A stretch of 64,000 bases of DNA, from assembly GCA_965202585.1 (NCBI GenBank), contig OZ241833.1, positions 19,034,001 to 19,098,000 of the forward strand. Reading direction: 5' to 3'. The stretch is from Thalia democratica (Eukaryota). The notes under the pieces are model-generated. The model saw nothing but the letters and a program-made list of their open reading frames with translations. It was not told the origin of the DNA and ran no database searches. Positions 1,701 to 62,700 of the stretch are shown piece by piece; the first letter of the stretch is position 1; the number at the start of each line of letters is the position of its first letter. A program made the position numbers and the translations under genes.

Positions 1701-3219
1701 TTTGTTCGATTAGGAGATGTTTAACTTATTAATCTGCGGTGTTTTAAGTTGTTTTGGCTTATGTTTGTTTGGTAATGTTTTTTGAAACATATCTTTTTTT
1801 TCATAAGTATTTTCCAAAATCTAATTATAGTTGTAATTCATTTTGTTTTAATCTACTTTTATCTCATAACTTTACGGCTTGTCTTTAAAATTGCTACATT
1901 TTAGTAAAAAATTCTTTCAGTAAAAAATGAACACTTTTTTTTTTGTGTTGATGACAAAAATAAAAATGACCGAATGGTGCCGAGATAAAAGATTAGCCGC
2001 TATCACGTCTCATCAGTGTCAAAGCGGTTGTCATATTAAACCTTTACTTCTGTTTAAAAAGCATTGAGGTTTTTTATTTTGAAGTTTTTTATGAAGATTA
2101 AAATTTAAACATTTATTTAACATAACTTTTTACCTAGTTATAATAAATCGACACCGTCTGTTGCAAGATTTTATTTATTAGAATTTTTGTTTTTAGCTTA
2201 TTTATTTAAATGTAAATTATATACAGCTAATTCGTGTACTTTTATTTATTTTCTGTGTTGTAAAGCATCTTCAAAAAGAATAAATAAACATACCAAGTTT
2301 TAGACACTTTTAGTATTTTTTGCGTCAAATAATATAGTTTTAAATGGCTGACAAGCGCTTTTGCTTAAACTTGAAATAGCGCTTTTAGTTTTAATTTAAG
2401 CAAACACCGTTGAAATTCTGAGTTTAAAACCTATACTAACTGTTTTTGTAAAAGTATTTTTTAAGTTGGAGAAAAACTCAAAATCTGTTGCTTTTTAACA
2501 AGATTACATGCGCTACAGAAATACCCATTAATATTTAAATGCCATAAATCGTGCACTTAAACTACTTAAGTTGCCATTTAACGTATGAGTTTTCATTGGT
2601 AATTGACTACCTGTGCTTGCGCAAAAAGGTTTTAAACAAAAGAATATTTTTTGATTAATGTTAAGACTTTAATTGATGATTAAAATCCTTGATTGTGTAT
2701 ACGATCTAAAATAAATGATTTATTTATTACACTTTTTATGTGTTTGTAAAATCTAAATGTACAGTACTTTAGACTTTTGTTTTATTTATTTGATTTATTG
2801 GATTTATTTTTTAACAAAAACCACACATTTAATTTTTTCTTTAAATCTTAGCAAATTGTATAAGACTCACCGTTTTCATTTAATTTTAAAAAACCATAGT
2901 TATTTTGCAGAACATTTTTTTTGTTTTTATAATTAAAAATCTAAGCAAGTGATGTTACCGTTGCAATACGAAACTTTAATAAACTTTTTACCAATAAAAA
3001 AATGCATTCATTCTTTGTTGCTCGTAGCATAACGGTATTTTTGAAGCTTATGGTATAGTTTTTAAGATCTATTTAAAAAACATACAGAACATTACGTTAA
3101 ATAGGTGTTTTTTATTTTACTTTACATCTGCTGTTACTATTGTAAGTAAAACTATCTTGAAAATACAACTTTGATTTTAGCCTTGATTTTTAGATATCAA
3201 AAAAAAAATCGAGACTTAC

Positions 3220-4279
3220 GCGCAATTCGCTCTCTCCTGCTTTCCATCCACGGGAAGGTGTTTGAAAGCAGAGGCGGCCGATGGAAGTTGCATTGAGCGG
3301 AAACTTTTAATAAGCGATTAGCAGGATCGTTTATTGCTGCGATGGCTGCTGCTTGGTGGTGCGCAGCAGAGTATGAGGAATTCGGTTGAGCTTGGGCGGG
3401 ATCGCTGCCCAACTGGGAGTTGGTCGCGAGCGCCAGAGGGTTGAAACTGCTGTGAGGACCTTGGTTTGCGTTTCCGTTTCTCATGCCTCCGTTCATGCTG
3501 CTCGTCGGAATCCCGTAAAAGTTGTCTTTTCTCGAGGAGTTTTCCGCTCGAGAGTGGAGATCGGCCGTGGAAGAATCAGACCTTCCTGCCGAGCTCCTTT
3601 TATCATCGTGACCGTCGCTCGTACACCCGCTGTCGTTTTGGTAGCTCATGTTGGAATACTTTTCGTTCTTTCCGAATTTAAAGCTGTTGTTTGGCAAGCT
3701 GGAGTTGTTAACTTCCGTGTCTAGCTGGTTGTTTCGAGAACAGTCGTATGTGCTCTGACCCAAGTGTCTGTTCGGCTGCTTGTTGTTGTTGTTGTAATCA
3801 TAATAAGAGTAGCTGTTAGAAAAAAACTCTCGGGGAGTTAGATCGGCGCCGGCAAAGTTGCTAGGTTTCAGACCGACATTCTGGTAGTTTTGACCGTAGA
3901 GTCCGGAATCTCTTTGCTGGCCGTTGTAGCCTCCGTGGTGATAAAAGCCGGGATGATTTCCCAGCCGCTTGTTGTACAGCTGGTTGTTATAAAAGTCGCT
4001 CTTCCAGTAATTGCTGATTTGTGGGTAGATGTAGCCGGAGTTTTGCGTGCTTGCCATGTTTCCCTGCATTGACTTGGGCTGCGGCGAGTTGTCGTCGAAC
4101 TGGCACTGAGGGGTGTTGGAAAAGTTCTCTCTCGTCTCGGTGCTGCTGGAGTCGGTGGGCACCGGGCTCAGTATCTGGTTGATGCTGAAAGCCATCCGGT
4201 CGTGGCCGTTGAGTGAGTGCGATCCGTTTTGCGGCTGCTGTAAGTGGACGTTTTCGGGCTGGTGTCGGACTTGCTGCAT
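3220..4279 (-). CDS. Tlx: T-cell leukemia homeobox (Tlx/Hox11, NKL class) transcription factor, first coding exon; homeobox exons presumably left of the window
   Basis: First ATG at 4279, in frame with the 372-aa ORF. Eh1 Groucho-binding motif FSINQIL at 4169-4189 (vertebrate TLX has FGIDQIL). TFPWMESRR near the exon end (FPWM at 3245-3256) matches TLX TFPWMESxRR. The exon ends phase 1 at a GTAAGT donor (3219-3214), so the ORF tail KSRFFF is intronic. No WFQNRR-coding sequence found by eye in 1-3200. Confidence 0.85.
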
Positions 4280-4360
4280 TCTCGTGGTGCAAATATGCTG
4301 CTTGAATTCCACCAAGTTTTATTAAAAAGTGTTACAGAAATCTACAAAATTAAGTCGTTA

Positions 4361-26550: not shown

Positions 26551-29003
26551 TGTTAACACGAATATTCCTATGCTAGTATTTTCCATTAATTAGATTACGA
26601 TCTTCCTAATTTCGCATTTGATCACTTTCCATGCGAATTATTAATTATTCAGATAGGTTCGATCCGAGAAATTTTCATCGAAACTAGTAATCTATCCGAT
26701 CTGAATTTACTTTTGAAATTAGAATCCTCTCAGATCCAAATACTAGTGAAAAAAATTCGGATCATGCCTTCCTTACTGAGTATGTTGATTGGTTTCTAAA
26801 GGCACTGACTTACTCTATATGGTAAAAATTACTATAAAGTTTTAGTCACATTTAAATTACCCGTAAAATTTCAATTAACAAGTTAATATTTCTTTCGTGT
26901 AGGTATATTTACTATGTACTTGACATGATTGCTTACAAAGTTAAGTAACTAAATTGTTTTTGAATGTTATTTACTGTTAAAACATGAAGTTGAAAGAATC
27001 GTTGCTAAGTTTTGTATCTAACATCTTCTGATAAAAAGTGTTATAGTAAACCAGCTAGTCTTTTTATTTTGTCTTTTGTCTTTCTTTACTTAGTTTATCT
27101 TACTGAAGTTAATTCTATAGGTATAGTATAGATATATAACTGCAGTTGTAGAAAGTTAACAGTTTAAATTTAAAAACAAACATTTTTTAGAAACAGATAG
27201 GTTTTAATTTTAGAATTTTTCTATTTTCTAATTTAAGACAAGTTATACCCTTAAGCTTACCATTCTAAACAAAACTTTTTTTTTATAAAATTTACATATT
27301 GTTTACTATTTAAAGTTAAATTATTCTAAAATAGATATCATATTCTGCTTTTTTTGGTTTAATGCATGTTTTACAATTTTTTATCTTAAAGTACAAGTGA
27401 TTAAGACTAAAAGATGTTTAAAAATTTATAGCCTTAGATATTAGTAATAAATAAGTGGTGTGTAGTTTTATGACCACTCAATTTTTCTATACAGCAGATC
27501 CAATGACAAACATTTTGAGTGTCGACATCATTTTCAATTAGCTGTAAACTAAAGCAGCAAAAAAAAAAAGATTCGGCTGTAGTTAATTAAAATTATAAAA
27601 TCTTTGAAGTACATAAAAAAAAACTAATGTTATTAAGAAAGAACTTTACATAAAATAAAATAAATTAAACTAGTAGTATTAAAAATAAGGATTTTTATTG
27701 ATAAATCATTAATAAAAAATAATTAAGTGGTCTAATGACCAGTTATAATAATTTTAAGTTTAATAGTATGTTTTTATTTAAAACTTACAATTTTTCTTAC
27801 TAAAATTCGATGTCATTAAAGTTAAACGTTAAATTTTGAAATACATTATCTACTGCCACATTAAATTAACGTTGTTTTTGCATTACTGTGATAGAGAAGT
27901 TTAAAAAAACAACATTATTTAGCTTTTTTTATAAAATCAATATTATTTGATTTTAATTAGGAAGGTTTGCTAATACACGGGTTCTTTTTCAAATTATATT
28001 TTTAAAATAATATTGTGTTTGCACTCGTGTTTACTTTAAAAATTTTATGCTCATCTATAGTTATAAGCACCCATTAAAATGTCATTAAGTATTTAAGCGA
28101 AAACTACACAATTGTAACAGTCTCAGTATTTTTTACAATAAAACAACACTCTAATAAGATTTAAATTATAAAAGAGAAAAAATATTGTTATTTTGATAAC
28201 AGTACTAAACTAAACACTTTTTATTGTAACTTTTATGTATTTTTATAAACAACATGAACGTAAAACATTAATCAGCAAAATATAATAGGGCGACGCACAA
28301 ACTTGGACGCTAAGGCTGCTGTTTTCTATGGACAACAAAGAAATTTTAAAAAGTTTCAGTTGTTATCGTTTAATTATAAGTTTTCGGCTATCGACATGTG
28401 ATATTCTTAAGCTTTTAAATTTCATAACGGTAGCCAATATAGGCGGAGCGATATCCCTTCTTAAAAAGTTCAGTGTACAAAAATAATATCAATTTAAAAT
28501 AGCTAGAACTAAATAAGCTAACGTTCAACATGAGTTTTTATATGACTAGAATTAGAGCATTGAATATTATACAATAAAACAATTTACTAACTTTATGTAA
28601 AGTAACAAAACTCCATTCAAAAATTTTTACAAACTTAGAGAAAATTATCAAAGTAGAGTATTCTAGTACACGTTCCATGTTAAATTAACTTAGACTACCT
28701 TAAATCTTAGTAAATTTAAAATTTCTACTGTAAAAATAACTCAACTTTGTTAAACAATTTATTAACCAAGTAAACATTTTTTTTTACTTTTGGTAGTGGA
28801 ATTATATGACAGGTTTTTTCTTAGAAACTAAATTTGAGTAGGTAAAACCTAGAGCTTTTCTTGCTTCCAAGCTCATAGCATTCATTATCTAAACAAGGGG
28901 TTATAAACATAAATTAAACATGCACTACACATCTAATAATAAATAAAGTTATAAATGAGTAAAATATTTTTCATACTTTGATGTTGCTTTGTAAATTTTA
29001 AAT

Positions 29004-29302
29004 CAGGGATGAGCTAACTTAGGTCCGCAAAGCTAAAATCTGCATCCGGCGAAGAATTATTCAGATAAAACATACTTTTTTAAATCAATAGAAAGAAAGT
29101 TTTTGTGTTGAAAACACTTACGTTTAGGCTTTATATTTAATAATTACCCCTGTATATTTCTCTATTTGTGCTTTTTTACTAATTTTTTGGTACACATTTT
29201 TTTTTATAATAAAAACTACAACTATTTTGAAGTAACTGCGGCCGTCGAGCAACATTTTATTGGAAAATTGGCCCGTGACTTATAAAAGACAGCCGGATCC
29301 TG
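29004..29302. mobile_element. hAT (Charlie-like) MITE, about 300 bp
   Basis: CAGG...CCTG termini with degraded TIRs (10/17 match). 8-bp TSD TTTTAAAT (28996-29003) / TTCTAAAT (29303-29310). GGTCCGC and GGCCCG subterminal motifs. Confidence 0.65.
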
Positions 29303-29459
29303 TTCTAAATAAGTTTACTTATTTGTAATAATACTTATTTATACTTAAATTAAATACAATTAAAAACAAAAAGTATTTAAGTTATATCTAATTATGTTCT
29401 TATTTCAACTTATTCAGTTAAAACGTATAAATAAATCTATCCAACTAATTACCACGACT

Positions 29460-30492
29460 ATAACACTTCCCCGATAGCCACTTTTATAAGAAAATTTTTA
29501 ATAGAAGACAATTAAAATTTCTTATAGTTGCATGAGTAATGTTAAAACTTTAATACAATCGCACAACAAAACAGTAATTTCAAACTTTAATAATAGACAT
29601 ATCAAAGCTAATACAAATAATAATTCTAGTAATAAAGTTAGTAATGACGTAGACATGTACAATATTTCTAATTATACTAATCATATTAATAATAAAAGTA
29701 ATAAAAATAATAATTTTAATACTAGGAATAATAACAGTAATAATAATGATAATCCTAATAGTAAAAATTTTAATTATGGTAACAATAATGTAAAACATAT
29801 TAAAACTTTAAAAATTAAAAATATAAGCTGTAATGATAACTTTAATTTTAATGATAATGAAAATATACATATCAACAGTACTAATAATAGTGTAGATTAT
29901 AACAATTAACGTATAACTAGAAGTATTTCTAAAATAATAAAAGAAAACTTAGAACAAATAAGTGATAATAGCGCTAAAAGTATAAGCAAAATGCAGAACA
30001 ATAAAACTATAAATAAATATTCAAAACCAACTAACCCTAATAGTAATAAGTTAAGTAATATGCCTAAAACATGTAATTGCCGTAAAATAAATAAAGATAA
30101 CTACCCATTAAAAGGTAATTGTTTAATTAAAAATGTAATTTATAAAGTTAAAGTTGAAAGTAAGGGCCCAGATAAAATTTATATCGAAAGTACAGCAGGT
30201 AGTTTCAAGGATAGATATGCTAACCATAAACATACTTTAAAAAAAAAAAAAAAAACAAAGCAAGCGTTTATCGGATTATATCTGGAGCTTTTTTCACAGG
30301 TACGGTAAAAGGCCAAACATGGTGTGGAGTATTGTTTTAAAGATCAAACATGGATCCAACGGAGTAAGTAGAATTTGCCCAACTTGCAATACAGAAAGAG
30401 CAGCAATTGCAGCAGAAGATAAAGACCTACTTCTGAATAAGCGGCAATATTTATCGAATATTTGTCCCCACAACCGACGATTCTACTTTTAA
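29460..30492 (+). mobile_element. 5'-truncated Penelope-like element: post-RT region, Asn-rich linker and GIY-YIG endonuclease, frameshifted
   Basis: HFPDSHFYKKIFNRR..SYSCMSNVKTLIQSHN motif; CNCRK..YPLKGNCLIKNVIYKVKV..KIYIESTAGSFKDRYANHK; then, in a shifted frame, LSDYIW..WSIV..CPTCNTERAAI..LLNKRQYLSNICPHNRRFYF with stop at 30490-30492. Confidence 0.85.
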
Positions 30493-33400
30493 TAACTCTG
30501 TCTATTTATGTACTAATTTATTTCACAACACTCACATTACAACCACAAACACTTGCAAGTTTAATACTTCATGTTTTAAGCTGTATAAATTATTGACCAA
30601 TTTGTTAAATTTATTATGACGTAACATTTCTGCACAACTCAATTTAATTTTCATTTTAAAAACTTGCCTATTCTTAGAGCTTTTTGAGGTCAGTGCCTAC
30701 TTTTATTAAATTTGTATTTTTTGTAGACAATTTTATAATTTTATGTTTTTATCCCAAACTTTGTTTTTAAACAATACAGTTCATTTATAGTTACTACCTA
30801 CATAAACACTATACATAATTTTACATGCTTTTTCTGCTTTTTTTCTAATGTGTGTTAATATTTTATAGACTCCGTAGATCTGTTCTTAAATTTATTTGAG
30901 AGCAGTGGAACGCCGTTAGTTGAAATAAAGTTTTAACAGAAAAACATCTGTGGTATATATTCCGATAAGCTTAGCTTATCAGGATCTCCAGTATTTAACG
31001 CCTTTTGACGTTACATCTTATATATATTTTATATGTTTTATAAGTATTTTTTCTAGTATTGTTTCTATGGTTACAAGGCTATGGGTTTCTTTCTTTGTAG
31101 AACTAAAGTAGAATACCGTCGTTTTTCAGATACCAATAATCATTAAGATAAAAGTAATATGTATACTTAGTTTTTAAGTATAGAAATACATACGACTTTA
31201 AATGACTCGAGGTGTATATAATGTTTTATTATTAATTATGAATCGGTAAAATGTTTCTACTAAAATTAGTTCTTAATTTTATTAGCTATTTCTGACACTT
31301 TACATTTAAATTTTGTTTTAAGATACCATTCTATGTTACGTCTTACAGACATTGCAATTTAATTATTGACACACCAAACTTTAATAAGAATACTTGTAGT
31401 TTTTCTCGATACTTGTGATTATGTTTTATGAAATAAGTGAAAAAAGTTAAAACAAAAAACTTTTAATTTAGTGTAAATTTCTATGTACAGGAAAATATTA
31501 AAGGGTAAAAACATTTTTTAAGCCTAGATACAACATTTGCACAATTTTGTTCACTGTAGTGACTGACTAAGTACAATGTTAAAATAAACTAGGTTTTTCA
31601 ATATATTTAAATCATTTCAGACACAAAAACTAAAAAGACAAGATACTGAAAAAAACAAAAAAAAAAAAAAACTTGAATGTCAGAAGTTTGTAAGAAGTTA
31701 GATAAATACTAAAAATTCAAGTATGGTTTTACTATTTAGTTCTTTAATTTCAAGGAAAAATGTTTATCAAAAATACTGCACGTAACTGATTACTACAAAT
31801 AAACTGACCAAAAACTAAACTTTACAATACCTTAATAATTAAATGTAAAAAAAAGCGATAACAAATTAAAAGCAAGGCCAGTTTAGCTTAGTTTTTATTT
31901 ATACTTTTTTGTGAAAATCAATAAGTAATACTTCTATTCATAATTAAAAGAACAAAATTAACCCACAAGAAAAACTTAAAGATTTTACAAACTTTATGAT
32001 AAAATTATCAATTAGATTACTTTTAAAGATTAAAGTTAGATTAATTTATTAGTCTTATAAGGTTTTGATTTCTTAAATGATGGAAACTTGTTTTTTGCTT
32101 TAACTTTTGTTGGGGTGATAGTAAAAAGATTATTACAACAAAATACAAAAAAGCACCATATTACAAATCTTAGTAAGTTTTAGAAAGTTCTTCGGTTTAC
32201 ACAACTTTAGCTTTATAGCTGAGTAATAAAAAATAGAACAGAATATATCAATAAGACTAATTTCTTACCATTACAAGTTAGTTTTAATTATAAACAAACT
32301 AAAGTTAAAGTTAAAAAGAGTTAGAATATAAACCTGATAAAAATATAGAACAATTGAAAGTTAATAAAAAAATCTTTTTGATTTTCAAAAATACACAAAA
32401 CATGGCAAGCTACTTCAAATATAATCTTAATAATATATTCTTTTTTTTTTTTAATAACAAGCTAAAGCGTGAACCATTAAAAAACATTAGTATAGTTTTT
32501 CTAAATATCTAAATAAACTAACGTGTTTTAAAACTTTCTTTTCTTAAACAAAATAGTAAGTAGGTATTACGCGACAAAATTTTAGTACTTTAAAATTAAA
32601 GTTTAAGTTTTGTAAAAAAAAAAAATAGGAAAAGTTTTTATCTTTATGAACTTAAATAAAGTTTTACCTATTTCTCGAACTGTTTTAATTTAACCTTTAC
32701 CTTTATTTTAAATTTTTCACTTCAAAGCACTTTGTTTACTAAAGAAAGTTGTTTATACATTGACTGTGTTCAGAGTATATGTATGTTTTTCTCACAAAGT
32801 ACAAATGATGTTTGGAAATTCAGAAAAAAACGGTTAAGTATAAAAATATTTTTTATAATCGATATAAAGCAACACGTTAATATTTACTTCTTTACAATTT
32901 TGTGTGTTGTCTAAATACCAAAACACTTGATAATTGTGACGACGTTTCTCAAAATTTCAGTGTAAATACCAATGGACAACATAATTATTTGCCAATTCAT
33001 CGAGCCTGTTTTTTGTGCACATTTGGCACCTGCAAGAAAAAATAAAGAGTTATACACTGTTTTGTATATAAGGTGGTTGTAATTTTAAAATTTAGTTTAA
33101 CTTTTTGTTTAACCTGTATAATTCAAGGAACAAAATAAATAGTGCATTATGTATAAATTTTTCTTTTTTTATTGTAAACTTAATAACTTGATGATAAAAT
33201 TTATTTGTTTCTTAAAAATATAAATAAAAATAAACTTAAATGCTTTTTAGAAATTATTTTTTTAACATTATTAATAACTAGTATTATAGAATTTTGTTTT
33301 TGTTTTAAGAAATTCATTTAAAAATGAGTATTTTTATTAAGTTCAGAAGCTGTTCTTATGTTGACTTAATACTCTAAATTTTTACTACTAGTTTTAGTTA

Positions 33401-33825
33401 AAGTATGTAAAAAACTCGATAATTTTTCATTATCGTAGATGCTCTATAAACTTTGCAGCTGTATATGCTTTAATTATAAAAAAGGTTTTGGTATACAAGT
33501 GAACAAATATTTTTAGCGAGAAAAATAGTGTCGTCAATGTTTAAAAGTTTTTGTGATAACCAAAACTAACTAATTGAAAAAACGACGAAATTTACATCAT
33601 AATCTTTCTTACAAAATTTTCTTAAAGTTTTATTAAACTTTTTTTAAACTAAAAAACTCAGTTTGCTTACTTGTAACTAAAATGATGAAACTAATTTTTT
33701 AACTCCTACACTAAAAATATAGTTACGTTTGTTGTAAACAATTACGAATAAAACGTTAAAATAAATCTTAAGTATATTAAAATAGCATACTCTGAACTAA
33801 GGAACCGGTATTTCTTTTAGATAAA

Positions 33826-34749
33826 ATGTTTATGAGACTAAACTTGAAGCTTGCTGTTTTATTTCTGTTCTGGAACAATTGTGTTTTGTCTAAAAGTTTT
33901 CAGCCTTACAATGACATAGATTCTAAGAATGAATTAGAAAGCAATTTATCAAACTTTGATAAACTAGATGTTGACGACTTGTTGGTAAGAAATATTTATT
34001 AGATAAATATATAATTAAACAAATTAAAAAAAAAGAAACAAAATAAACAACACGTCTAAGCTTCGAAAATATTAACTATTAATGGACTATCAGTTGGTAA
34101 TAATTATATGAGTTTAAGAAGTCTATCATAAAATATAAAATAAAAATAAAAAGCCACAAAAACATATGTCTACAATTTAAAGATAAATGGAAGTACTTAT
34201 TAAAAATTAAAACACTTAACTTTGAACTTAAAAAACGAAATAAAAAAGTTAAAAAATGTTTTTACTCATATAAAACTAATTTATAACTTTTTTATCCTAG
34301 TGGTTGTCAATAAATTCAGCGAAAACAGCTTAGTACTTTAAGACTTAGCGTTTTAAATTTTAGCAGAAAAGTAGGTCATCCATACAATTTTTAATAAAAT
34401 TTAATTAAAAAAATAATAATAACATATTTAACTCGTAGAACTTGTTTTAATAATTATAATAGTTAATTTAAAACAGGATTTACTAATTTCCGACAAAAAA
34501 GATCCTCTTTCATTTTTGAACGATGACAGTTTTCACAAAAAAGCACAAAATCCACTTTTAAACAAACTAAAGTTAGTAAACCGGCCTGAAGATATTTCTC
34601 AAACTAGAAACAAAGACTTATCTAAGTTTTCAAAACGCTCTTCAGAGATAGATCTACTTAATATACTTGGAATGCTACGAAACAAATATCTTTTCTCAAA
34701 TCTTGATAACGACATTTTGAATACCATGATAGAAAACTATAAAAAGTAG
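33826..34749 (+). CDS. Secreted prepropeptide (peptide hormone/neuropeptide precursor), 143 aa, PTH-family-like C-terminal peptide; exons 33826-33984 and 34477-34749
   Basis: Acceptor TTTCTTTTAG 5 nt before the ATG. Signal-peptide-like MFMRLNLKLAVLFLFWNNCVLS. Phase-0 intron GTAAGA...AAACAG joins the exons with no stop. Single KR at 34633-34638, followed by SSEIDLLNILGMLRNKYLFSNLDNDILNTMIENYKK-stop. AATAAA at 34775-34780. The gene model is better supported than the PTH family label. Confidence 0.7.
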
Positions 34750-36856
34750 ATTCGTGTTCTTTTTTCAAAAAATTAATAAAAATGCATTATTACTAAAATG
34801 TTAAGATTTTATTTATTTATTTTATTTTTTTAACGGTAATTATAAACTCTAAGCTACTAAAAAATACTAAATATTACAAAAGAGCTTAATATTAAAATAT
34901 TTATGAAATATTAGTATCAAAAAAAAGTTAGAAATTAAATATTAATCAGACAAGAAAACCTTCAAAAAATTTTTGATATAAAATAAACTAATAGTTAACA
35001 ATGTTTAGCAACTAAAGTATAGTAAAAAAATATTAGGTCAATGTGGTAATTATATCTAATGGTTTTTGCAAGTTTGTAAGAAAGAAAAATATAAATAAAA
35101 CTGTTTTAACTTTTATTTCACTACTTATAAAAACTTCACTCGCTTTTTACAAACTTCGTTAAAACCTTTTTAAAGTTAACTAAAAAAATAAGTAAAAGTT
35201 TAATAGAAGTTTATTTAAATGTAATATTTAAAACTAAGTAATGTTGTTATTTTCAAATGAAAATGAAAATAAATTTCATTTTAATTAAATACAATAACTC
35301 AATAAGTGATATTAACTAATAATTTACTTTATCATATATCATTATGCAATAAACTTCAGTAAAAGTTTGTACCAACATTAAAGGCTTACAATTGTTTTTG
35401 TGTTGCAACTTTTTTATTTTTTTGCGTTAATATTCCTGTTTTCTAAGTATTCATTTCTTTAAATTATTAAGATTAAAGTCTTCTTGTTAGTATAAGTACT
35501 TTTGCTTTAATTTATCTATTACCCTACCAATTTTCAACACTTTTATATCTGTTATATATTTCTGAATTACCTAAGCAAAACTTTAAAAAAAAAATTTTTT
35601 ATAACTGAACTTTTATATCATATCTAAAACAGTTTTAGAGAAACACTTAAAACAAACAACATATATAAAAAAATTAAAAAAAAACTAAAATACCAATGAT
35701 AGGATAACTAAATTAATCAAAGGTTAAAAAAAAGAAAACAGAGAAAATGAAAAATAAGACTAGAATAACATTTTAAAGTTAAGTTATATAAACTAATTAT
35801 ATTAACTATTACTACTTATCATTAATTGGAACATTACTTTTAACGAAGAGTTTACAACGGTGACAGATGTAGAACACTAATACATAAATGTTTATATAAA
35901 GTGTTGTACTGCACGTCATATAAATCTAAAAAAAAAAACGTTGTAGATACTAATAACGAACTTTATAATACTTGTGTTAATAAATAGGTATTTTCATTCA
36001 AAAGGCTAAAAGTATTACATTTTATCACAATATGCGGTAATACTATAAAAATTTTTTTAGTGGGTCCTAATAAGACGAAACTAGATCGCAGATTTTCACG
36101 AGGGCTGTTATTAAAGATAGGCCGCAGCAGTCTAGTACCTACAAAAAAAAAACATAAAACTTCGAACATTTTGCAATAATATTCAATAATTTTTTTTTTG
36201 TTAAAGTTTTTGTTTTGACGTTAAACTGTTTTCTGTTAACAAAAACAAAAAAACAATGCCGGCAACTTTGGACTATAACAAAAAGGTAGTTCAACATAAA
36301 CATGTTTTTACATTTAAAGATGAGTTTATAAATATCATATGATAACTTTTGCTAGTTATCTATTTAACTATATGTTTTTAACACTAACATATTTTTAAGT
36401 TGAAACTAAGTAGTATTTAAATTCTAATCATATTTTACAATAAAAGAAAAAATTTTTAAGGTGATAAAAAAAGTACTAGAAAAGTGATTGTACGATTTTG
36501 TAGCTTAAAGTTTAAAAAAAATTAAAACCTTTAAAAACTTATATTATAATTATAAAACTAGTATATCAGATGTTTTTAATCCGTTTATAACTAATTATCT
36601 AAAAGTTTATAGGCACAGAGAGTGAATTAATTTATTTTTGTACTTTATTATTTTTATATTGGTTATTTTATGTATTAAGTTGACAGTACAAAATTAGATC
36701 TCCCTTTTGAAAGTTATTTTTGTTTATTTTCACGTAAAGGTTGAAATTTAAAAATTAAGGATTAAGATTTTACAACAGTTAATATTTTAAAAAGTGTAAT
36801 ATTCCTTTTAGTTAAATCTATTACATTTTGTTATTATAACTTTTTTAGTTACCAAA

Positions 36857-41712: not shown

Positions 41713-44700
41713 CTGTGTTATAAAAAATGTTTTAGTGTTTTGTTTTGTCTTTAGTGAAAAATTCAGACTAATTTACGATAAAATTTATTTAAAAGTATAC
41801 CCGTTTTTAGTCGATCATTAAATATAAATTCTAGATATTCAAAAAACTCACAAAAATCTTCACACTGCGGACCATCATACATAAGTGTGCATCTAAAAAT
41901 TTTTAGTAAATTTAAAAAGTGTTTAAGTACTTTAGTAGAAAAATTTCAAATTAAGTGCTTACTTAAAATATGCACTCAATAGTATTAAACATTTTAGCTC
42001 TCTGAAAACAGATTATTTATGTACTTTTTTATAGTATTAAGGCTACATCTAAGTATTTTTCATTTAAAACTCTTACGTTTTGTAAATGGAAAACCTGACC
42101 AAACATTTTTTTTTACTTTTAATCTTACACAGAAAAATTCCTTAGTACGAGAGAATTTATAAACTAAGGAAGCCACCAAAAATAAAGTTTTCATAAACTC
42201 ACGTGCAAACAGGGTTTCCAGTTGTATTAGTAGGAGTGCAAGTTGCTCCATTCAGACAATAATCATTACTGCATTGGTCTGTAATTTTGTTTCATATTTA
42301 ATAAAAATTGTCTTAAACTAAAAAAATCTTAAATGTTGTTAAAACTACCTATACAAGTTTCATTCTCTTGAACAGTTGTACCGGGCGGACATTGGCAGGT
42401 GTAACTACCAATCGTGTCGAAGCAGTTCTGGCCAGATAGACATGGATTATCTAAGCATTCATTTACGTTTACACACTCGCTTGTACCAAATAAGTCATAT
42501 CCAGCGTTACACGAACATTCGAAACCTTTATTCGAAATATTTGATAAAGTATTAGTAGTACTTTGTTATAGTTATTTTTTTAGGTTATTTAAAAGTCTAA
42601 AACAAATTATACTTGATGACAAAAAGTAAAATTATTAGAACTAGAAACCAACATAATTAAAATTACTCATTTAAGCAAGACGACTATAACTAAACTAAAG
42701 GTATTCTTGAAAAGATAATACATAAGTAGCAGTTAACTAAAAAAAAAACGTTCTCAGAACATCACTAACAAATGATGTAGCTAAGATTATGAAGATGAAC
42801 ATTTTATACTTATTGATAAGAGTTGTCCTGAAATGCAGGATTTTTTTATTAGTAATAATGAAATACTTGAATCTGTAAATCATTTAAAAGATAAAATACT
42901 CAGAACAGCAGAAAATATACCTTCGTATTTTTTGAAACGAATTATCAGCTTTCTCATTTTCCCAATCTCGTTAATTTTTAATTGCTCTTTAGCAATATCT
43001 TTTATACCAAGGCAATGAAAAATATCTTATATTATACCAATATTCAAAAAAGGAAACAAAAATAATCCATTAAACTATAGACCAATTTCACTAACTAGTA
43101 GCTTTTGCAGATCTTTTGAACATATAATTTCATTAAAAAATACTTAATCATCTTTTCTTAAATAATCTTATTTCTCCGAAACAATTTGGTTTTCTTCCTA
43201 AACGAACTTCATGTATTCAATTATTGGATTGCCTTCATTCATGGTTAGTATCTTTTTTTACCAATAAATCTATCAATGTAATTTATACAGACATTTAGAA
43301 AGCGTTTGACTCTGTCTCTCATTTTAAGTTAATTAAAACTTTATCTCAATACAAAATTAATAGAAATCTAGTTGAATGGTTCAAAGAATTTCTTCAGGAA
43401 AGAACACAAAGAGTAGTTATCGGTAACACGTTTTCAGAATCCTTACCAATTTTTAGTGGAGTTCCGCAAGGAGGGGTTATAGGTCCACTGTTATTTATAA
43501 TTTATATAAATGATATAGCCTTAGAGGTTGACTCTAATAGCAACATTAAGCTTTTTGCAGACGACACAAAAATATTTAGCCAATCTAACTTAGTTTTACA
43601 AAAATCTTTAGATAAAATCTACTATTGGTTAAAAGAAAGGAGATTAAACCTAAATCCCAGCAAATGTCATGTTTTGAATATTCGCAAAAGTACACCTATT
43701 CCAGCGTTTGATTTTAAAATAAACAATGCAATCTTACCTAAAACTGAGGTATTTAAAGACCTTGGAATTTTTATTTCAGATAATTTGAAATGGAACCATC
43801 ATATTAACTTTATTTACCGTAATGCATCAATTTTATCTTTTCAAGTTCTAAAAAGCTTTATATCTACGGATTTGGTAATTCTCAAGAAACTGTACCTAGT
43901 TTACATCCGTCCTAAGATGGAATACAACACACCTTTATGGTCTCCATATTCTATAAAAGACATCAACCAACTAGAATCTATTCAAAAAAAATTTAAGAGA
44001 TTAATCTTTAATCGGTGCAACATTTCATATACGTCTTACATAGACAGACTAACAAAGCTTAATATAAAAACTTTAGAGTACAGAAGACTTGAATTTGATC
44101 TAATTACTTTTTTTAAACTGATTAACAATGAAACTACTATTGATTCTCAAACTTTCTTTAAACCTTATGAAAATAATTACTCACTCAGAGGTAATAATAG
44201 AAAATATACATGCAAATATCATTTCAACTATGTTGGTTGGCACAAATCTTTTTTCTATCGTTCGGTAAAAATGTGGAACAAACTTCCAAATGAACTAGTA
44301 TCGTGCAAAAATCTTAAACATTTTCGACCAAACTTAAAAAGATTTGATTTAAATAAAATATTTACCAGTAAAATTTATAAGTGATTAGTTTTGTTCATCT
44401 CTTTATCCATTGATTTGGTGTGTGGTATGTAGTTTATTGGTAGTTTAATCTGTAAGTTACACCTTTCACTTATAGATTTTAGGTACTTTTCAACTTTGAT
44501 TTTTTGGAAGGGCTGTTGTTAATGTGCTTTGGGCTTTAGATTTTGAAATAATTGAATATTCAGTTGATTCCTAAGCTAGATTTGTGAACTGTTGCTGCCA
44601 AATTTTTGAAGTGATTTTTGACTGAATTTGCCGTCATAACGAGTGGCAAATAGTAGCTGAGATGAATGTTCTGCAAGATGAAGACAGCTTCTGAAGATTT

Positions 44701-50700: not shown

Positions 50701-53700
50701 AGAGTAAGCGTTGGAAAGCTCTTCTACTACCTGAGATTGCAAGGCAGCATATTCAGGCGAGCTTGTATTTCTGTATGCAGAAATGTAGCTTCCAATCTCC
50801 GAAGCACTGACAGTAACCTCAAGTGTGAAGCTCTTTACCGGACCTTTAATTTTTTTTAATTTAATTGCTTATTGTGCAATGTTTTAAATATCAAAACGTT
50901 TGATTATTTCTAAATTAAATGAAAAGTTATTTTCATCTTTTAATAAAAAGTTTTGTTAAAATTTTACGATGACTTATATAACAAAAATTTATAATAAATG
51001 CATATAATCTTTTTATATCTACACTTTGAAGAAGGTTGTAAGTAATAGATGATAAAATAATATTATTATAATATCATTATAGTTGTGTAACCTGTTTCTA
51101 CGACAAGTTCAGTCGGCTCGCTTACTCTTCCATCAGCGTTAACAGCTTGGGTCGAAAATGTGTAAACAGTGTTTAACCTGAATAGTAGTAGTCAGTTTAT
51201 TTATAAAAACTAGAAAAAAATTGTGCATAGATAATTCTTTTATTATTGTTTGAGTTGTAACTAGTTTTCTTATGTAATTTACAAAAAAAAATACAAGGTG
51301 ATACTTGCCATACTAGTGCGGTAATAAACAAAAAATAAACAAACCACTGTATGTAAACTTTATAACCCAACTAACCTAGCATTAGTGAAAATTATAGTGC
51401 TGGTTGTTTCCAAAGTTTGCGAGAAATCAACAACTCCCCCTTCAACTCCTTCGACGGTAATTGGGAGGGCTCCCATTGGCAGGACAACTGCGATTGTGAT
51501 TCCGCTGTCAACGGAAGATGACATCAGAGTCAGTTGCACAGGGTCCGTTACTGTTGTAATTTAGAAAAGGGGTTATAAGCATCATAAAACTGTTTTTAAG
51601 CTAAGTTGATAAAAATAACTGATGAAAATAGATTAAAGCTTGACTTAGTTTTTTATTTTTTATAATTAAGAAATATAAGTTAACTGAAAAATGAACTTAA
51701 TATAATAAAAAAAAACAACTTATTAATAGCTTTTACTAAGATAAGAATAAAAAAGATAAGTTATACAAAGAAAGTAAAAAAGTACTTATTATTGTAAGTA
51801 AAAGCTTCACCTAATACATTTTTAATTATGAGCAGAAACACTATTAAAAGTTTGTTACTTTGTCGGATAATGTATTTAATTAAAAAAACAACCCATGGTT
51901 TATACTACTAATGCAAAAAACCATAATAAGCTTAATAAATAAACTATACTAACCAGTGTGAACGGTTTCTGCCAAACCAAATTCGCTGGCTCCGGCATTG
52001 TAAATAGCCTTAGCTGAAACAACGTATTCTGTACCCGAAGATAGGCTCGACAGTACAACACTGGCGTCTTCTTGCGCCAATTCATCTCCGTTCACATTTA
52101 CTACATAAGACACAGCACCAGAGACCTCACTGATTGTTACCGATATTTCGTTTGTGCTAACAGAAGTCACAGAAACAGATGGTCCTCCGACAATTACTAT
52201 TTGAATGAAATTTAATTATTACTTAAACGTCATTTACGTTGTAGTTTTAGGTAAGTTTTAATTTCTGACAACCATAAAAAAAATTAAAACTTAATTTTAC
52301 TTATACAGTATACAGAAATCGTTTTAATATAAAACTTTTAAAGTATGTTTAAAATAATTTAAATAACTAACACACAATAATTTCTAACTAAAAAGATAAA
52401 ACTTGAAAAATACTAATTGAAATTAAAAAAAAAAAACTAAATCTTGCAAAAAGTATAAAAGATAACCTGTGTAGACACTAGTTGAAGTTCTACCGCTGTC
52501 TCCAGCTTCGTTACTTGCAGAAACTTTAAAAGTGTACAGAGTGCTTGGCTCGAGACCCTCGGCTCTGAACTCGTTAGTGTCTGCATCAACTCTTACTTCA
52601 ATTGCTTCTGCGCCAGAGGACTCGTCAGTGCCTGCATCAACTACGGAGGCGCTGTACCTTACAGAGTATTCGGATGCACCTTTGACTGATGCCCACTGAA
52701 TGCCGACCGAGCTGGCAGTTTGCAAAGAAACACTGACAAATGAAGGTGCCGAAGGAACTGTGTATAAATATAAAACTAAGGTTATTTATCAAAGTTTATG
52801 GATATTTTTATAATAAAGTAAGACATGCATGTTCAAGCCATGTATGAGTTTACTTGCAAATAGTTACTTTTAAAGTTTTGTCAATTTTAACATTTAGATG
52901 ATATAAAAAATACTAAAAAAAATACAACTCCAGCTTACCGGTCGTCAAATTAGCAAGTCCGGCCACTGACGGTATGCCGACCACCGTCGAAACAACTTCG
53001 ACTTGGTACGCGGTTCCTGGTTGGAGAGAAGTGACTCGAACGCTGTTGCCGTCCACGAAAGGCACGACGCCGTTCGCAACAACCACGTCCTCTTCTGCCG
53101 TCACGTCGTTCACCTCGTAAATGTTGAGATCGATGTTAGGCAGCGAGTCCCACGACAAAAAGAAGGAGGTCGAAGTTATCTCAGTGACGGAAACAACAGG
53201 CGGCGTTGGTCCTAAACGTGCAATAAAAGTTTAAGTTGTTGTGTGGTAGTGAAAAAATAGTTTTTGATGTATCTAATATCTAAGTAGGTTAAGTAGCTTT
53301 AGGCCTTAACGAACAAAATTTTAGCAGTATTTAGCTTAAATAAGTATTCGCTGGTTTAATCAAATAAGAATAAAACTTTTTTTTGCAATTTAAGTCACAA
53401 AAAAAAAACAAACTCGTTCTGATTTCGATCTGCCCGCTTTCGAAACTGTTTCCTGAAAGACCAACAGCAGTCACGCTGAACAAGTACGCGATGCCTGGTC
53501 TGAGTGACGTCACAGTGGTTTCCAGGGATGTGGTGCTCACATCTCTTGATACTGAATCATTTAGTGATCTGTAAATTTTATAAATCAGTTGTAAGCCATT
53601 TTAATAAACAAAAACATCATGTTGATACAAGAAATGCCATTGAAACTGTTTATTTAAAAAAGTTTTTAAATAGCCCATCAAACAATTTATCAGCTACCTT

Positions 53701-59700: not shown

Positions 59701-62700
59701 GCCGGCACTGATATGTTTAATATTTTAAAGCACTTAACTTATGCAAGTGTATACAATTTATTTTGAACAATTATTTATGTTTTACTAAAGAAAATAGTTA
59801 TTTTGAGAAAATAAATTTCTAATGAAGCACAACGTATTTGTATAGTTTAAAGAAAAACTGATTTAGTTAGTGTAAAATATTTTTATCATACGCACACGTT
59901 GTGAAATTAAATACTCCCGGGTTCGATATTGGGCCGTCTTGGTCAAAAGTAGCTACAGTCAGTGTGTAAGAAGTACCGCTTTCTAACAAAGAGAAACTTA
60001 TCGAGTTGGTCCTGCTAAAAACGGCACTTTCGGCAACCCTTCTTCCTGTGGATGCTTCCATCAGACGCAAATCGTATCCGCTGTTTTAAAAAACAAAATA
60101 TTTTATTGAAATATTACATCTATAAACAAATAAAGTGTATAAATGGTAAGTTACAACATTTTTGTTTAATCGTCATAAATTTTTCAAACATTGATAAAAA
60201 TTTTTGATTCAAAAATTAAAAATAAAAATAAAACATATGCACGAGTTTATAAAATATTTAGAACCAAAAATAAAGCTAAAGTTTAAATTTTCGAGCTAAA
60301 ACTAAAAAATTAATAACATTTGAAGCATAAACATTTACTTTCATATGGGAAATAAAGTTGATATTTTGTTTATATTTTTGTTTTCTTTTTTCTAAACTGT
60401 AGTTTAAAACAGAACGAAATAGATAAAGATACTTTAAAGTATTAGATAAAAAATATGCATTTACTTTATCAAAAAATCAAAAAAAAAAAAATTACAATAG
60501 AAGAGTTGCTGAACGTGGTGTTTCCCATTGTATTGTGATATCATTAGTAGTAATATTGGTTACACTGAATGAACTTGGATTTACTGCTCCTGTTGTAATA
60601 AACGTTGATACGTGACCATTTTATTCAAAATATATTTCAGTGTTTTATTTCACATAAAACAATCCAAGCGTAAAATAGCTTGGAATTTTCAAAGGTTAAA
60701 AAGCTTGACTTGTAAAATGATACATCAAAAAAGACAAATAAAAAATACTACTTGTTGAATTAACGATCGATACAACTGAGCTTCTTCCGAATTCTCCGAC
60801 TGCTTGTAAAGTGAAAGTAAATTCCTGCCCGCTCGGAAGTCCGGAAACCGAAAATGGGGAGTCAAAGACCGAGTAGTCGAGGTAAACATCGCTGCCCATA
60901 AGAACGGTGAAAGCGTACGAAACTGCATTCGGCTGCGGAGTGAACTCGAACTCCAGTGAGGAGCTCGTTCTTGCGATTGCCGTGAAGTTCATTACGTTTT
61001 GAGGAGCTGCAAAGTTTATTCAAGTTTAAAAACAAATTTTTAGTTAAAGTTAAGTTATAAAAACAACTACAGCCGCTTGATAAATGCATTTCAAATAGAA
61101 AAGAAAAACACGACACGAATTTTACATTCGTATACTAGGCTTGAGATTTTTTAAAAGGTTTTCAGATAAAGAATCGGCAACTTAAATCTTTATAAAACTT
61201 TCGTATCATTAAATTTGCATTAGTTATATAAATGTTTGTAAGTTAGATTTTGTTGTTTAAGTAAACCTTTTTTTATTGATACTTTTCGCTAACTACAAAC
61301 TGTTACTTTTACCATCATTTTTCGTGCAGAAACAAAGTTGCACTTTTTAGTTTATAGTTATATGTAGCCTTTTACTTTGGCAATAATATGATCTGAAAGC
61401 TTTAAAGACGCTTACCAGTTGTGAAAGTGACCACCTCTGAAGGTTCGCTTGCCGCCTGACCAATGTTTTCCTGGTCTATGCCTCTCACGGCAACCGTCAC
61501 GTTGTAAACGGTGCCTTCCTCCAAACCGGACAACTGAACTCGCTGCACGTCTTCTGATTGGTCAATTTCTCCGCTGACTTGGACGACGTCACTGGAAGAG
61601 GAGCGGGCCATCACCACATACGCGACGCTGCCTTCAGTTTGGTTAAACTGGACTTCGACGGAAGTTTGAGTGATGTTTTCGAGTTTGACGTTTGTGGGAG
61701 AGCTTGGTCCTTTAAAGAAGTATACAAATTGTTTTCGAACTCAACATTAAAATTATTAAATTTATTGTACCGTTTTTATACGTTAAAGCTTTTAAAATTT
61801 GTGTACTTTACTTGCAAATCATTAACCAAAACAGAGTTGTTTAGTTTAAAAATTTATAACAACGCTTTGTATTTAAACTTATTTTTAAAAAAATTAAATA
61901 AAATTGGAGTTTAAAGTTAACAAATCAAGGCTTTACTTGTTTGGAAATCAAAAGAAGCCTTGTCGCTTGACCCAGCTTCGTTAAAAGATGTGATTGACAG
62001 AGAGTAGTTTGTGCCTGCTCGTAAAGTGTCTTCAGTAAAATTGAAGCTTGTTGTTGTGAAAAACAAGCTGTTTGCATCATCGGCGTTCAGTGTGAAGTTA
62101 GCCAGAACTTCGCTTGCTGACTCAACAGTTAGAAAGTATGTGTCGGCTGATCTCACTGCAGGCCAAGAAAACTCTGCAGAATCGACTTCTACTCTTTCTA
62201 ATTGTACTGAGCTCGGTCTCGGTGGTGCTGTTTAGAAATTATTTAAAATGTTAAATAGTTTTTTTTATTAACAAAAAAGTAAAATACAACTCGAAATTTA
62301 AATTATTTATATATTTAGGTTGAATTAAGCCAACAATAAATAATTTTTACACCGTTTGAGCAGGTATCACGGTTAGTTCATAAAAAAATACTTTTAATCT
62401 TAAAAAAAAATTACTAACATTTGTACAGAAAATAAATCTAAAGACAAGATTTTGTGAAATAACTAAATTCATTACGATTTTTTTATTTTCTGAAAGAGTT
62501 TAATCTAAGAAAGACAGGTAATCGCAGAAATAGTCAACAAATACAATGAAACTACTGAAGCTCTTACAGTAAAACGAATAAGAACTTTAGTTAAAGTATT
62601 GACTTTTGAAATTGAAAAAGGTTACAGAGCTTTTATAAACTTTCTACAGTACTTTTTGTGTATGATTAGTTTTTTAATTGTCTTAACTTTTTTAAGATCA

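Follow-up and report, generated by a model that had tools for sequence, protein, structure and literature searches.

The stretch analyzed here (the window) is a 64,000-nucleotide (nt) piece of contig OZ241833.1 of the salp Thalia democratica, and positions 33826-34749 of its forward strand appear to hold a small, complete, two-exon protein-coding gene that is apparently unannotated. The comparative evidence for this gene is strong, and we regard its existence as very probable. We favor, with a probability of roughly 0.6, the reading that it is a small lineage-restricted gene for a prohormone-like or neuropeptide-like precursor that would release a conserved 34-residue peptide. The initial annotation of this region had proposed a hidden spliced gene for a secreted precursor and had placed its product in the PTH family. 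The first proposal is supported by conservation among three related taxa. The second is unsupported by profile, PDB, BLASTP and Smith-Waterman tests, by the residues of the peptide and by the structure of the gene.

Gene structure and predicted product

Coding exon 1 (33826-33984, plus strand) comprises 53 codons, from an ATG at 33826 in an AAAATG context to a TTG/GTAAGA donor at 33984/33985, and contains the start codon, a signal-like peptide and a conserved acidic N-terminal pro-region. A phase-0 intron of 492 nt (33985-34476, plus strand; GTAAGA...AACAG) separates it from coding exon 2 (34477-34749, plus strand), which begins at an AAAACAG/GAT acceptor, has 90 codons and ends with a TAG stop at 34747-34749. 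As read in the window, exon 2 encodes the remaining pro-region, a Lys-Arg (KR) site, the terminal peptide and a final Lys-Lys (KK). Joined in phase 0 (GT..AG), the two exons give a product of 143 amino acids (aa). The coordinates and counts that the initial annotation gave for the phase-0 splice, the 143 aa and the signal-peptide exon were confirmed in the window, and so were its single KR and the ending of the peptide in IENY.

The predicted signal peptide (33826-33891, plus strand) is 22 aa long, with Arg4 and Lys8 in its n-region, LAVLFLFW as its h-region and NNCVLS as its c-region. By direct reading, the signal would be cut after residue 22, with Val at -3 and Ser at -1, and the Kyte-Doolittle hydrophobicity of its core has a 9-residue maximum of 2.5. 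By this heuristic, the product appears to start with the N-terminal signal peptide that is characteristic of prohormone precursors. The KR (34633-34638, plus strand) is the sole KR, RR or RK of the precursor and, by analogy with general prohormone-processing rules, the presumed site of a prohormone convertase. After it come 36 aa (34639-34746), of which 34 remain without the terminal KK. These 34 aa are the predicted mature peptide (34639-34740, plus strand; SSEIDLLNILG...IENY), and the C-terminal KK (34741-34746, plus strand) is presumably trimmed by an enzyme of the carboxypeptidase E type. No Gly precedes this KK, and the peptide therefore has no amidation signal. The precursor contains two KK sites and a single Cys, which is located in the signal region, so that the 34-aa peptide is cysteine-free; its net charge is -3, and its residues 19-27 form the acidic string F-S-N-L-D-N-D-I-L. 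We found no paralogue of the gene elsewhere in the window.

AlphaFold2, applied to exon 2 with an alignment of three sequences, returned short helices and no tertiary fold, with a predicted local distance difference test score (pLDDT) of 61 and a predicted template modeling score (pTM) of 0.26. Two helices were modeled in the peptide part, at residues 6-17 and 24-35 of 36, with a pLDDT of about 76. Helices without a fold, as modeled here, would be easier to reconcile with a processed precursor than with a small folded protein or domain.

Conservation among three related taxa

Each exon was searched against a collection of 5.8 billion proteins, and the matching Tara Oceans marine metagenome contigs were compared as DNA. 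All matches were open reading frame (ORF) calls on Tara Oceans DNA contigs. The contigs gave 16 loci in two sequence types, the A-type (L001-L004) and the B-type (L005-L016), each of which was identical across samples. The window, the A-type and the B-type thus represent three related taxa.

Both exons are kept in the three taxa in the same order, together with the GT and AG of the intron, its phase 0, the AAAATG context of the start codon and a downstream AATAAA. The donor GTAAGAAATATT is identical in all of them and the acceptor ...AAAACAG is kept, with an intron length of 492, 509 and 473 nt. In nucleotide identity to the other two taxa, exon 1 reached 97.5-98.7% and exon 2 89-94%, both without a single insertion or deletion (indel), while the intron showed 73-86% with many indels. 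The non-coding flanks (360-400 nt on each side) showed 68-90%, with 0.9-2.1 indel events per 100 nt. Between the window and the B-type, the exons carried 0 indels in 432 nt, compared with about 9 expected from the flanks (P=1.3e-4). Substitutions in the exons fell predominantly on third codon positions (20/34 and 18/31). The ratio of nonsynonymous to synonymous divergence (dN/dS) by the Nei-Gojobori method was 0.30-0.42, and dN was smaller than dS by Fisher's test (p=0.0015, window versus B-type). A sliding comparison along the syntenic contig L001 (11.5 kb) revealed peaks of identity at the two exons. Judged from these comparisons, the gene model is far beyond chance, because the exons, the splice sites and the frame are kept while the intron and the flanks diverge and gain indels.

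Distribution of constraint along the precursor

We counted the variable residues in each region of the precursor across the window, the A-type and the B-type. Variability was low in the signal peptide (1/22 residues) and in the N-terminal pro-region (residues 23-59; 3/37), high in the linker (residues 60-105; 13/46), and absent from the KR (0/2), from peptide positions 1-22 (0/22) and from the terminal KK (0/2). Peptide positions 23-34 varied at 5/12 residues. The contrast between the linker and peptide positions 1-22 gave p=0.01, and peptide codons 1-22 showed 0 nonsynonymous changes in 50 sites against 1-2 synonymous changes. Invariant dibasic sites therefore bracket the peptide, and it is better conserved than the preceding spacer. 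This pattern supports the view that the peptide after the KR has been under strong purifying selection, as in hormone and neuropeptide precursors.

Constraint on the acidic N-terminal pro-region, whose last residues are an invariant KK, comes close to that on peptide positions 1-22, and the region may serve in sorting or constitute a second product. The expectation of the initial annotation that only the peptide after the KR would be conserved was accordingly borne out in part: positions 1-22 of the peptide are invariant, but the region encoded by exon 1 (4/53 residues variable) is equally conserved.

Searches for relatives

When a profile was run with HMMER against 1.84 billion representative proteins, the B-type ORF was the sole match; no other homologue and no related tunicate protein emerged. 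An orthologue in Ciona, if one exists, would be beyond the reach of HMMER. The ESM Atlas returned only unnamed clusters or clusters of cyclic nucleotide monophosphate (cNMP)-binding proteins, at chance-level scores. Among JGI metagenome contigs, an exact search for the spliced junction gave no match and an alignment scan with exon 2 gave no relative; these two negatives are uninformative, because that collection rarely contains zooplankton. A full-text literature search for the peptide string found no paper that contains it, and a literature search found no study of salp neuropeptides. Since relatives were undetectable outside the three taxa, we read the gene as probably lineage-restricted.

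A processed precursor or an unprocessed secreted protein

From the exon structure, the conservation and the invariance of the processing sites, all of which were observed, we infer splicing, secretion, cleavage and bioactivity in the following form. A short mRNA would begin a few tens of bases before the ATG, lose the 492-nt phase-0 intron and be polyadenylated about 40-50 nt past the stop codon. The 22-residue signal peptide would route the 143-aa product to the secretory pathway, where a prohormone convertase would cleave after the sole invariant Lys-Arg and a carboxypeptidase would strip the invariant Lys-Lys. The result would be a linear, cysteine-free, non-amidated, acidic (-3) and helical peptide of 34 residues, whose invariant residues 1-22 would make the contact with the receptor. 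The acidic pro-region (residues 23-59, ending at the invariant KK) would act as a sorting or chaperone segment or become a second product. A class B1 G protein-coupled receptor, perhaps of the PTH type, is a possible receptor, although none of the tests indicated it.

Several observations weigh against a processed bioactive peptide. The three taxa are closely related, and their similarity could partly reflect a short divergence time. Synonymous sites are unusually conserved in exon 1 and in peptide codons 1-22 (33826-33984 and 34639-34704), with a dS of 0-0.14, compared with a divergence of 14-27% in the intron and a dS of 0.16-0.29 in the linker codons; AT mutation bias on two-fold degenerate codons, or an extra constraint at the nucleotide level, could account for this. 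An amidation signal, which is present in many neuropeptides, is absent from the peptide. Neither is the peptide clearly amphipathic, its helical hydrophobic moment being no higher than that of shuffled sequences. No junction-spanning product was found in the collection of 5.8 billion proteins. Of the 31-mers sampled from the region, 7-19% do occur in six marine metatranscriptome runs, but comparable fractions of these words occur in DNA metagenomes from that project, so that the metatranscriptome words only hint at expression and do not prove it. A share of 7-19% is about what would be expected from transcripts or DNA of the A-type and B-type, because long identical runs are confined to exon 1 and the first part of the peptide region.

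The same conserved product could be used without processing, as a secreted small protein of about 121 residues that serves as a component of mucus, tunic or feeding filter, or as a carrier, with the KR as a surface dipeptide. Conservation throughout the product except for a linker of about 30 residues, including the region encoded by exon 1, would be natural for such a protein, as would the lack of an amidation signal, the acidic and Asn/Leu-rich composition and the predicted helical segments along the whole of exon 2. Nevertheless, AlphaFold2 shows no compact fold (pTM 0.26, pLDDT 61), there are no cysteines to stabilize a small secreted protein, and the invariant sole KR and the terminal KK exactly bracket the most conserved segment. 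We therefore consider an unprocessed protein unlikely and retain the processed precursor as the favored reading.

Comparison with PTH and other class B ligands

According to the initial annotation, the peptide was a PTH-like ligand. If so, the gene would genuinely belong to the PTH/PTHrP/TIP39 family, as the salp form of the PTH-like peptides predicted in tunicates and amphioxus, and its peptide would activate a PTH-type class B1 receptor through the string S-SEIxL..LG. The similarity that gave rise to this idea is real: SEIDLLNILG and human PTH SEIQLMHNLG agree at 6/10 residues, as had been claimed, and at 7/14 when the comparison is extended, and the identities start one residue after the cleavage site. 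A shuffle test anchored at the N-terminus gave P=3.4e-4 against PTH, but this test was devised only once the match was known, and its value does not survive correction for the hormone families and candidate precursors considered. In Smith-Waterman comparisons with 17 class B ligands, PTH(1-34) ranked first with a score of 29 (z=2.7, p=0.02), which becomes about 0.3 after correction for 17 comparisons. The PTH(1-34) query string was identical to PDB chain 1et1_A. The best local alignment with PTH requires a gap of 5 residues and yields no equivalents of Arg or Trp, and BLASTP gave no alignment with PTH(1-34).

Profile and structure databases were silent as well. The Pfam families PF01279 (Parathyroid) and PF14980 (TIP39) gave no match at E<=10 in exon 2 or in the peptides of the three taxa, while controls of equal length were detected: PTH(1-34) at E=1.8e-6, PTHrP(1-36) at 5.7e-15 and TIP39 at 1.8e-24. 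The Parathyroid profile had been named in the initial annotation as a check on its proposal, and this check turned out negative. At the same threshold and in the same sequences, Pfam found no CRF or other hormone family. A search of the PDB, which contains dozens of PTH, PTHrP and analogue chains, returned only unrelated helices and no PTH, PTHrP or analogue chain when a single sequence was used, and likewise no PTH-related chain with the three-taxon profile. For peptides of 34 residues these negatives have limited power, because even PTH(1-34) as a query finds PTHrP no better than at E~0.1 and misses TIP39.

At the level of residues, 4/8 of the N-terminal positions common to PTH and PTHrP are matched. 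The peptide has equivalents of Ser, Glu, Leu7 and Gly12 together with Ile5 and Leu11. The latter two are specific to PTH and not found in PTHrP, and are thus weak evidence for a descent that predates the PTH/PTHrP duplication. Val2, Gln6, His9 and Lys13 are absent. The receptor-binding helix of PTH(15-34) is marked by Arg20, Trp/Phe23, Leu24 and Leu28; the C-terminal half of the salp peptide is acidic and lacks equivalents of Arg20, Trp23 and Leu24. PMC4354418 regards the MH(D/N) motif as ancestral among PTH peptides; it is absent as well, with L-N-I in its place. As for gene structure, the pth genes described in that source consist of three exons, one of them in the 5' untranslated region (5'-UTR), and their coding intron falls immediately ahead of the KR (PMC4354418). 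The coding intron here lies 52 codons upstream of the KR and is not adjacent to it. A further structural point against membership is that the AG 5 nt before the ATG, which had been likened to the PTH 5'-UTR acceptor, is missing from the B-type.

In overall design, the salp product resembles the PTH family (PF01279) in being a secreted precursor whose KR immediately precedes a linear, helical peptide some 34 residues long, in having its strongest conservation in the N-terminal part of the peptide, and in assembling the pre-pro-peptide from two coding exons; with human PTH it also shares the N-terminal string S-E-I-x-L-x-x-x-L-G. It differs from PTH in its pro-region (85 residues, compared with 6), in that the salp peptide ends the precursor whereas PTH runs to residue 84, and in the C-terminal half, which is acidic here and basic in PTH. 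With TIP39/PTH2 it shares a linear, helical, non-amidated mature peptide at the extreme C-terminus of a precursor of about 100-140 residues, preceded by a long pro-region, but there is no sequence similarity (z=-0.6) and no match to PF14980. The CRH, urocortin and DH44 precursors also carry a helical peptide at the C-terminus, roughly 40 residues in length and preceded by a long pro-region, and this peptide has an I/L-D-L motif close to its N-terminus. By contrast, their sequences score as shuffles do (z 0.2-1.7), no Pfam match was obtained, and the Gly-Lys/Arg amidation signal required in that family is absent here (...ENY-KK).

The PTH-like peptides of tunicates and amphioxus, which we compared by description only, come from the same animal group and carry the same claim of a PTH-like ligand of low similarity for the PTHR-like receptors present in tunicates. 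Mirabeau and Joly (2013) reportedly predicted such peptides in both groups, and On et al. (2015) are said to have paired an amphioxus PTH-like ligand with its receptor. The length of 34 residues and the C-terminal placement of the mature peptide, as in TIP39, agree with membership in the PTH family, and an invariant stretch of 22 N-terminal residues would suit a ligand that activates with its N-terminus. The background is permissive: PTH-like peptides of relatively low homology are mentioned for tunicates and amphioxus (cited in PMC4354418 and PMC5640766), and PMC3483286 gives Ciona two PTHR-like receptor genes and reports that Ciona and amphioxus yielded no TIP39 gene. Against this stand the silent profiles with matching controls, the negative PDB and BLASTP searches, the corrected and post hoc statistics, the missing residues in both halves of the peptide, the restriction of the Ile5 and Leu11 identities to PTH, and the position of the intron. 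We consider true membership in the family quite improbable. Equally doubtful is the idea that the peptide is the natural ligand of a salp PTHR-like class B1 receptor, which would combine a PTH-like activating N-terminus with a TIP39-like precursor layout. A lineage-restricted precursor thus remains our favored reading.

Flanking signals and an upstream conserved block

In the three-taxon alignment, a putative core promoter lies at 33773-33799 (plus strand), 27-53 nt before the ATG. It consists of a TATA-like TATATTAAAATA (33773-33784), partly kept among the three taxa, and a 15-nt block GCATACTCTGAACTA (33785-33799), identical in all three, for which a promoter role is suggested by position and conservation. 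An AG dinucleotide at 33819-33820 (plus strand), 5 nt before the ATG and after a T-rich tract, is a candidate acceptor. The initial annotation had likened it to the acceptor of the 5'-UTR intron of PTH. The window and the A-type have this AG, but the B-type lacks it and reads TTAATTAT/ATAAAATG at this place, so that the observation holds for two of the three taxa. It could serve as the acceptor of a 5'-UTR intron or, alternatively, as a trans-splice acceptor. Downstream, the polyadenylation signal AATAAA (34775-34780, plus strand) follows the stop codon by 26 nt. It lies within a block TTTTTTCAA.AAAT.AATAAAAATG that is kept in the three taxa, and the DNA further downstream diverges.

A conserved non-coding block of about 260 nt (32830-33090, no strand assigned) lies about 740-1000 nt upstream of the gene. 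It is about 96% identical across the three taxa, compared with 74-86% around it, which exceeds the identity of the coding exons, and contains an invariant TATATAAGG near 33067. We rejected an RNA gene at this place, since the block had no Rfam match and no excess of RNA folding on either strand. The block is probably a cis-regulatory module, that is, an enhancer or promoter, and judging by its proximity it possibly regulates the peptide gene.

It is very improbable that the two exons themselves are conserved non-coding elements, or exons of a non-coding RNA, whose frames are open by chance in an AT-rich genome. In favor of this reading, exon 1 and peptide codons 1-22 are nearly as conserved at synonymous as at nonsynonymous sites, and the upstream block, clearly non-coding and 0.8 kb away, shows equal conservation. 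However, conservation in the exons stops at a canonical GT donor and AG acceptor with phase 0 kept, 0 indels occur in 432 nt (P~1e-4), substitutions are biased to third positions with dN<dS (p=0.0015), and an ATG with a signal-like peptide, a stop codon and an AATAAA are conserved in the correct order.

Implications

Peptide hormones of thaliaceans (salps) are essentially unstudied, and tunicate class B1 receptors, including the two PTHR-like genes of Ciona, are still without well-characterized ligands. A conserved precursor with a single peptide offers a cheap and concrete ligand candidate for these orphan receptors. The predicted peptide has 34 residues and is linear, so it is easy to synthesize and direct testing on receptors is feasible. 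If it should prove to be a PTH-type ligand, it would help to date the origin of PTH signaling and would provide a bridge at the sequence level from the vertebrate PTH peptides to their counterparts in invertebrate chordates. If not, it would be another fast-evolving, lineage-restricted peptide gene of the kind that standard prediction misses in very AT-rich genomes.

Surroundings of the gene

The gene stands alone in a gene-poor, AT-rich stretch that covers about 26-43 kb of the window. The window as a whole is very AT-rich, with a G+C content of 21-36%, and of about 21-23% around the gene. Upstream of the conserved block, the window and the A-type share a segment of 4.2 kb (28347-32580) with Asn-rich ORFs at 29532-30308, and the B-type lacks it at this place. 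Part of it (29462-29894) occurs in inverted orientation downstream of the gene in the B-type contig L010 (L010:2900-4942), within an ORF of 680 aa in which Pfam found no family. Since it is missing in the B-type and partly inverted downstream, the segment is probably mobile, likely a mobile element of unclassified type.

Three further features lie elsewhere in the window. At 43674-44384 (plus strand), an ORF of 236 aa resembles by eye the C-terminus of ORF2 of a non-LTR (long terminal repeat) retrotransposon; Pfam gave no match at E<=0.01. On the minus strand, an ORF of 372 aa at 3197-4315, in which Pfam found no family, has an eh1-like FSINQIL near its start and ends with FPWMESRRE, which we take by eye to be a Pbx-interaction hexapeptide as in homeobox proteins of the Tlx/Hox11 type. 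It appears to form the first coding exon of a homeobox gene, and the homeodomain exon would lie further downstream. Finally, exons encoding fibronectin type III domains (PF00041) lie at 52423-52725 (minus strand, E=5e-9) and 60696-60992 (minus strand, E=6e-3), and belong to one larger minus-strand gene.

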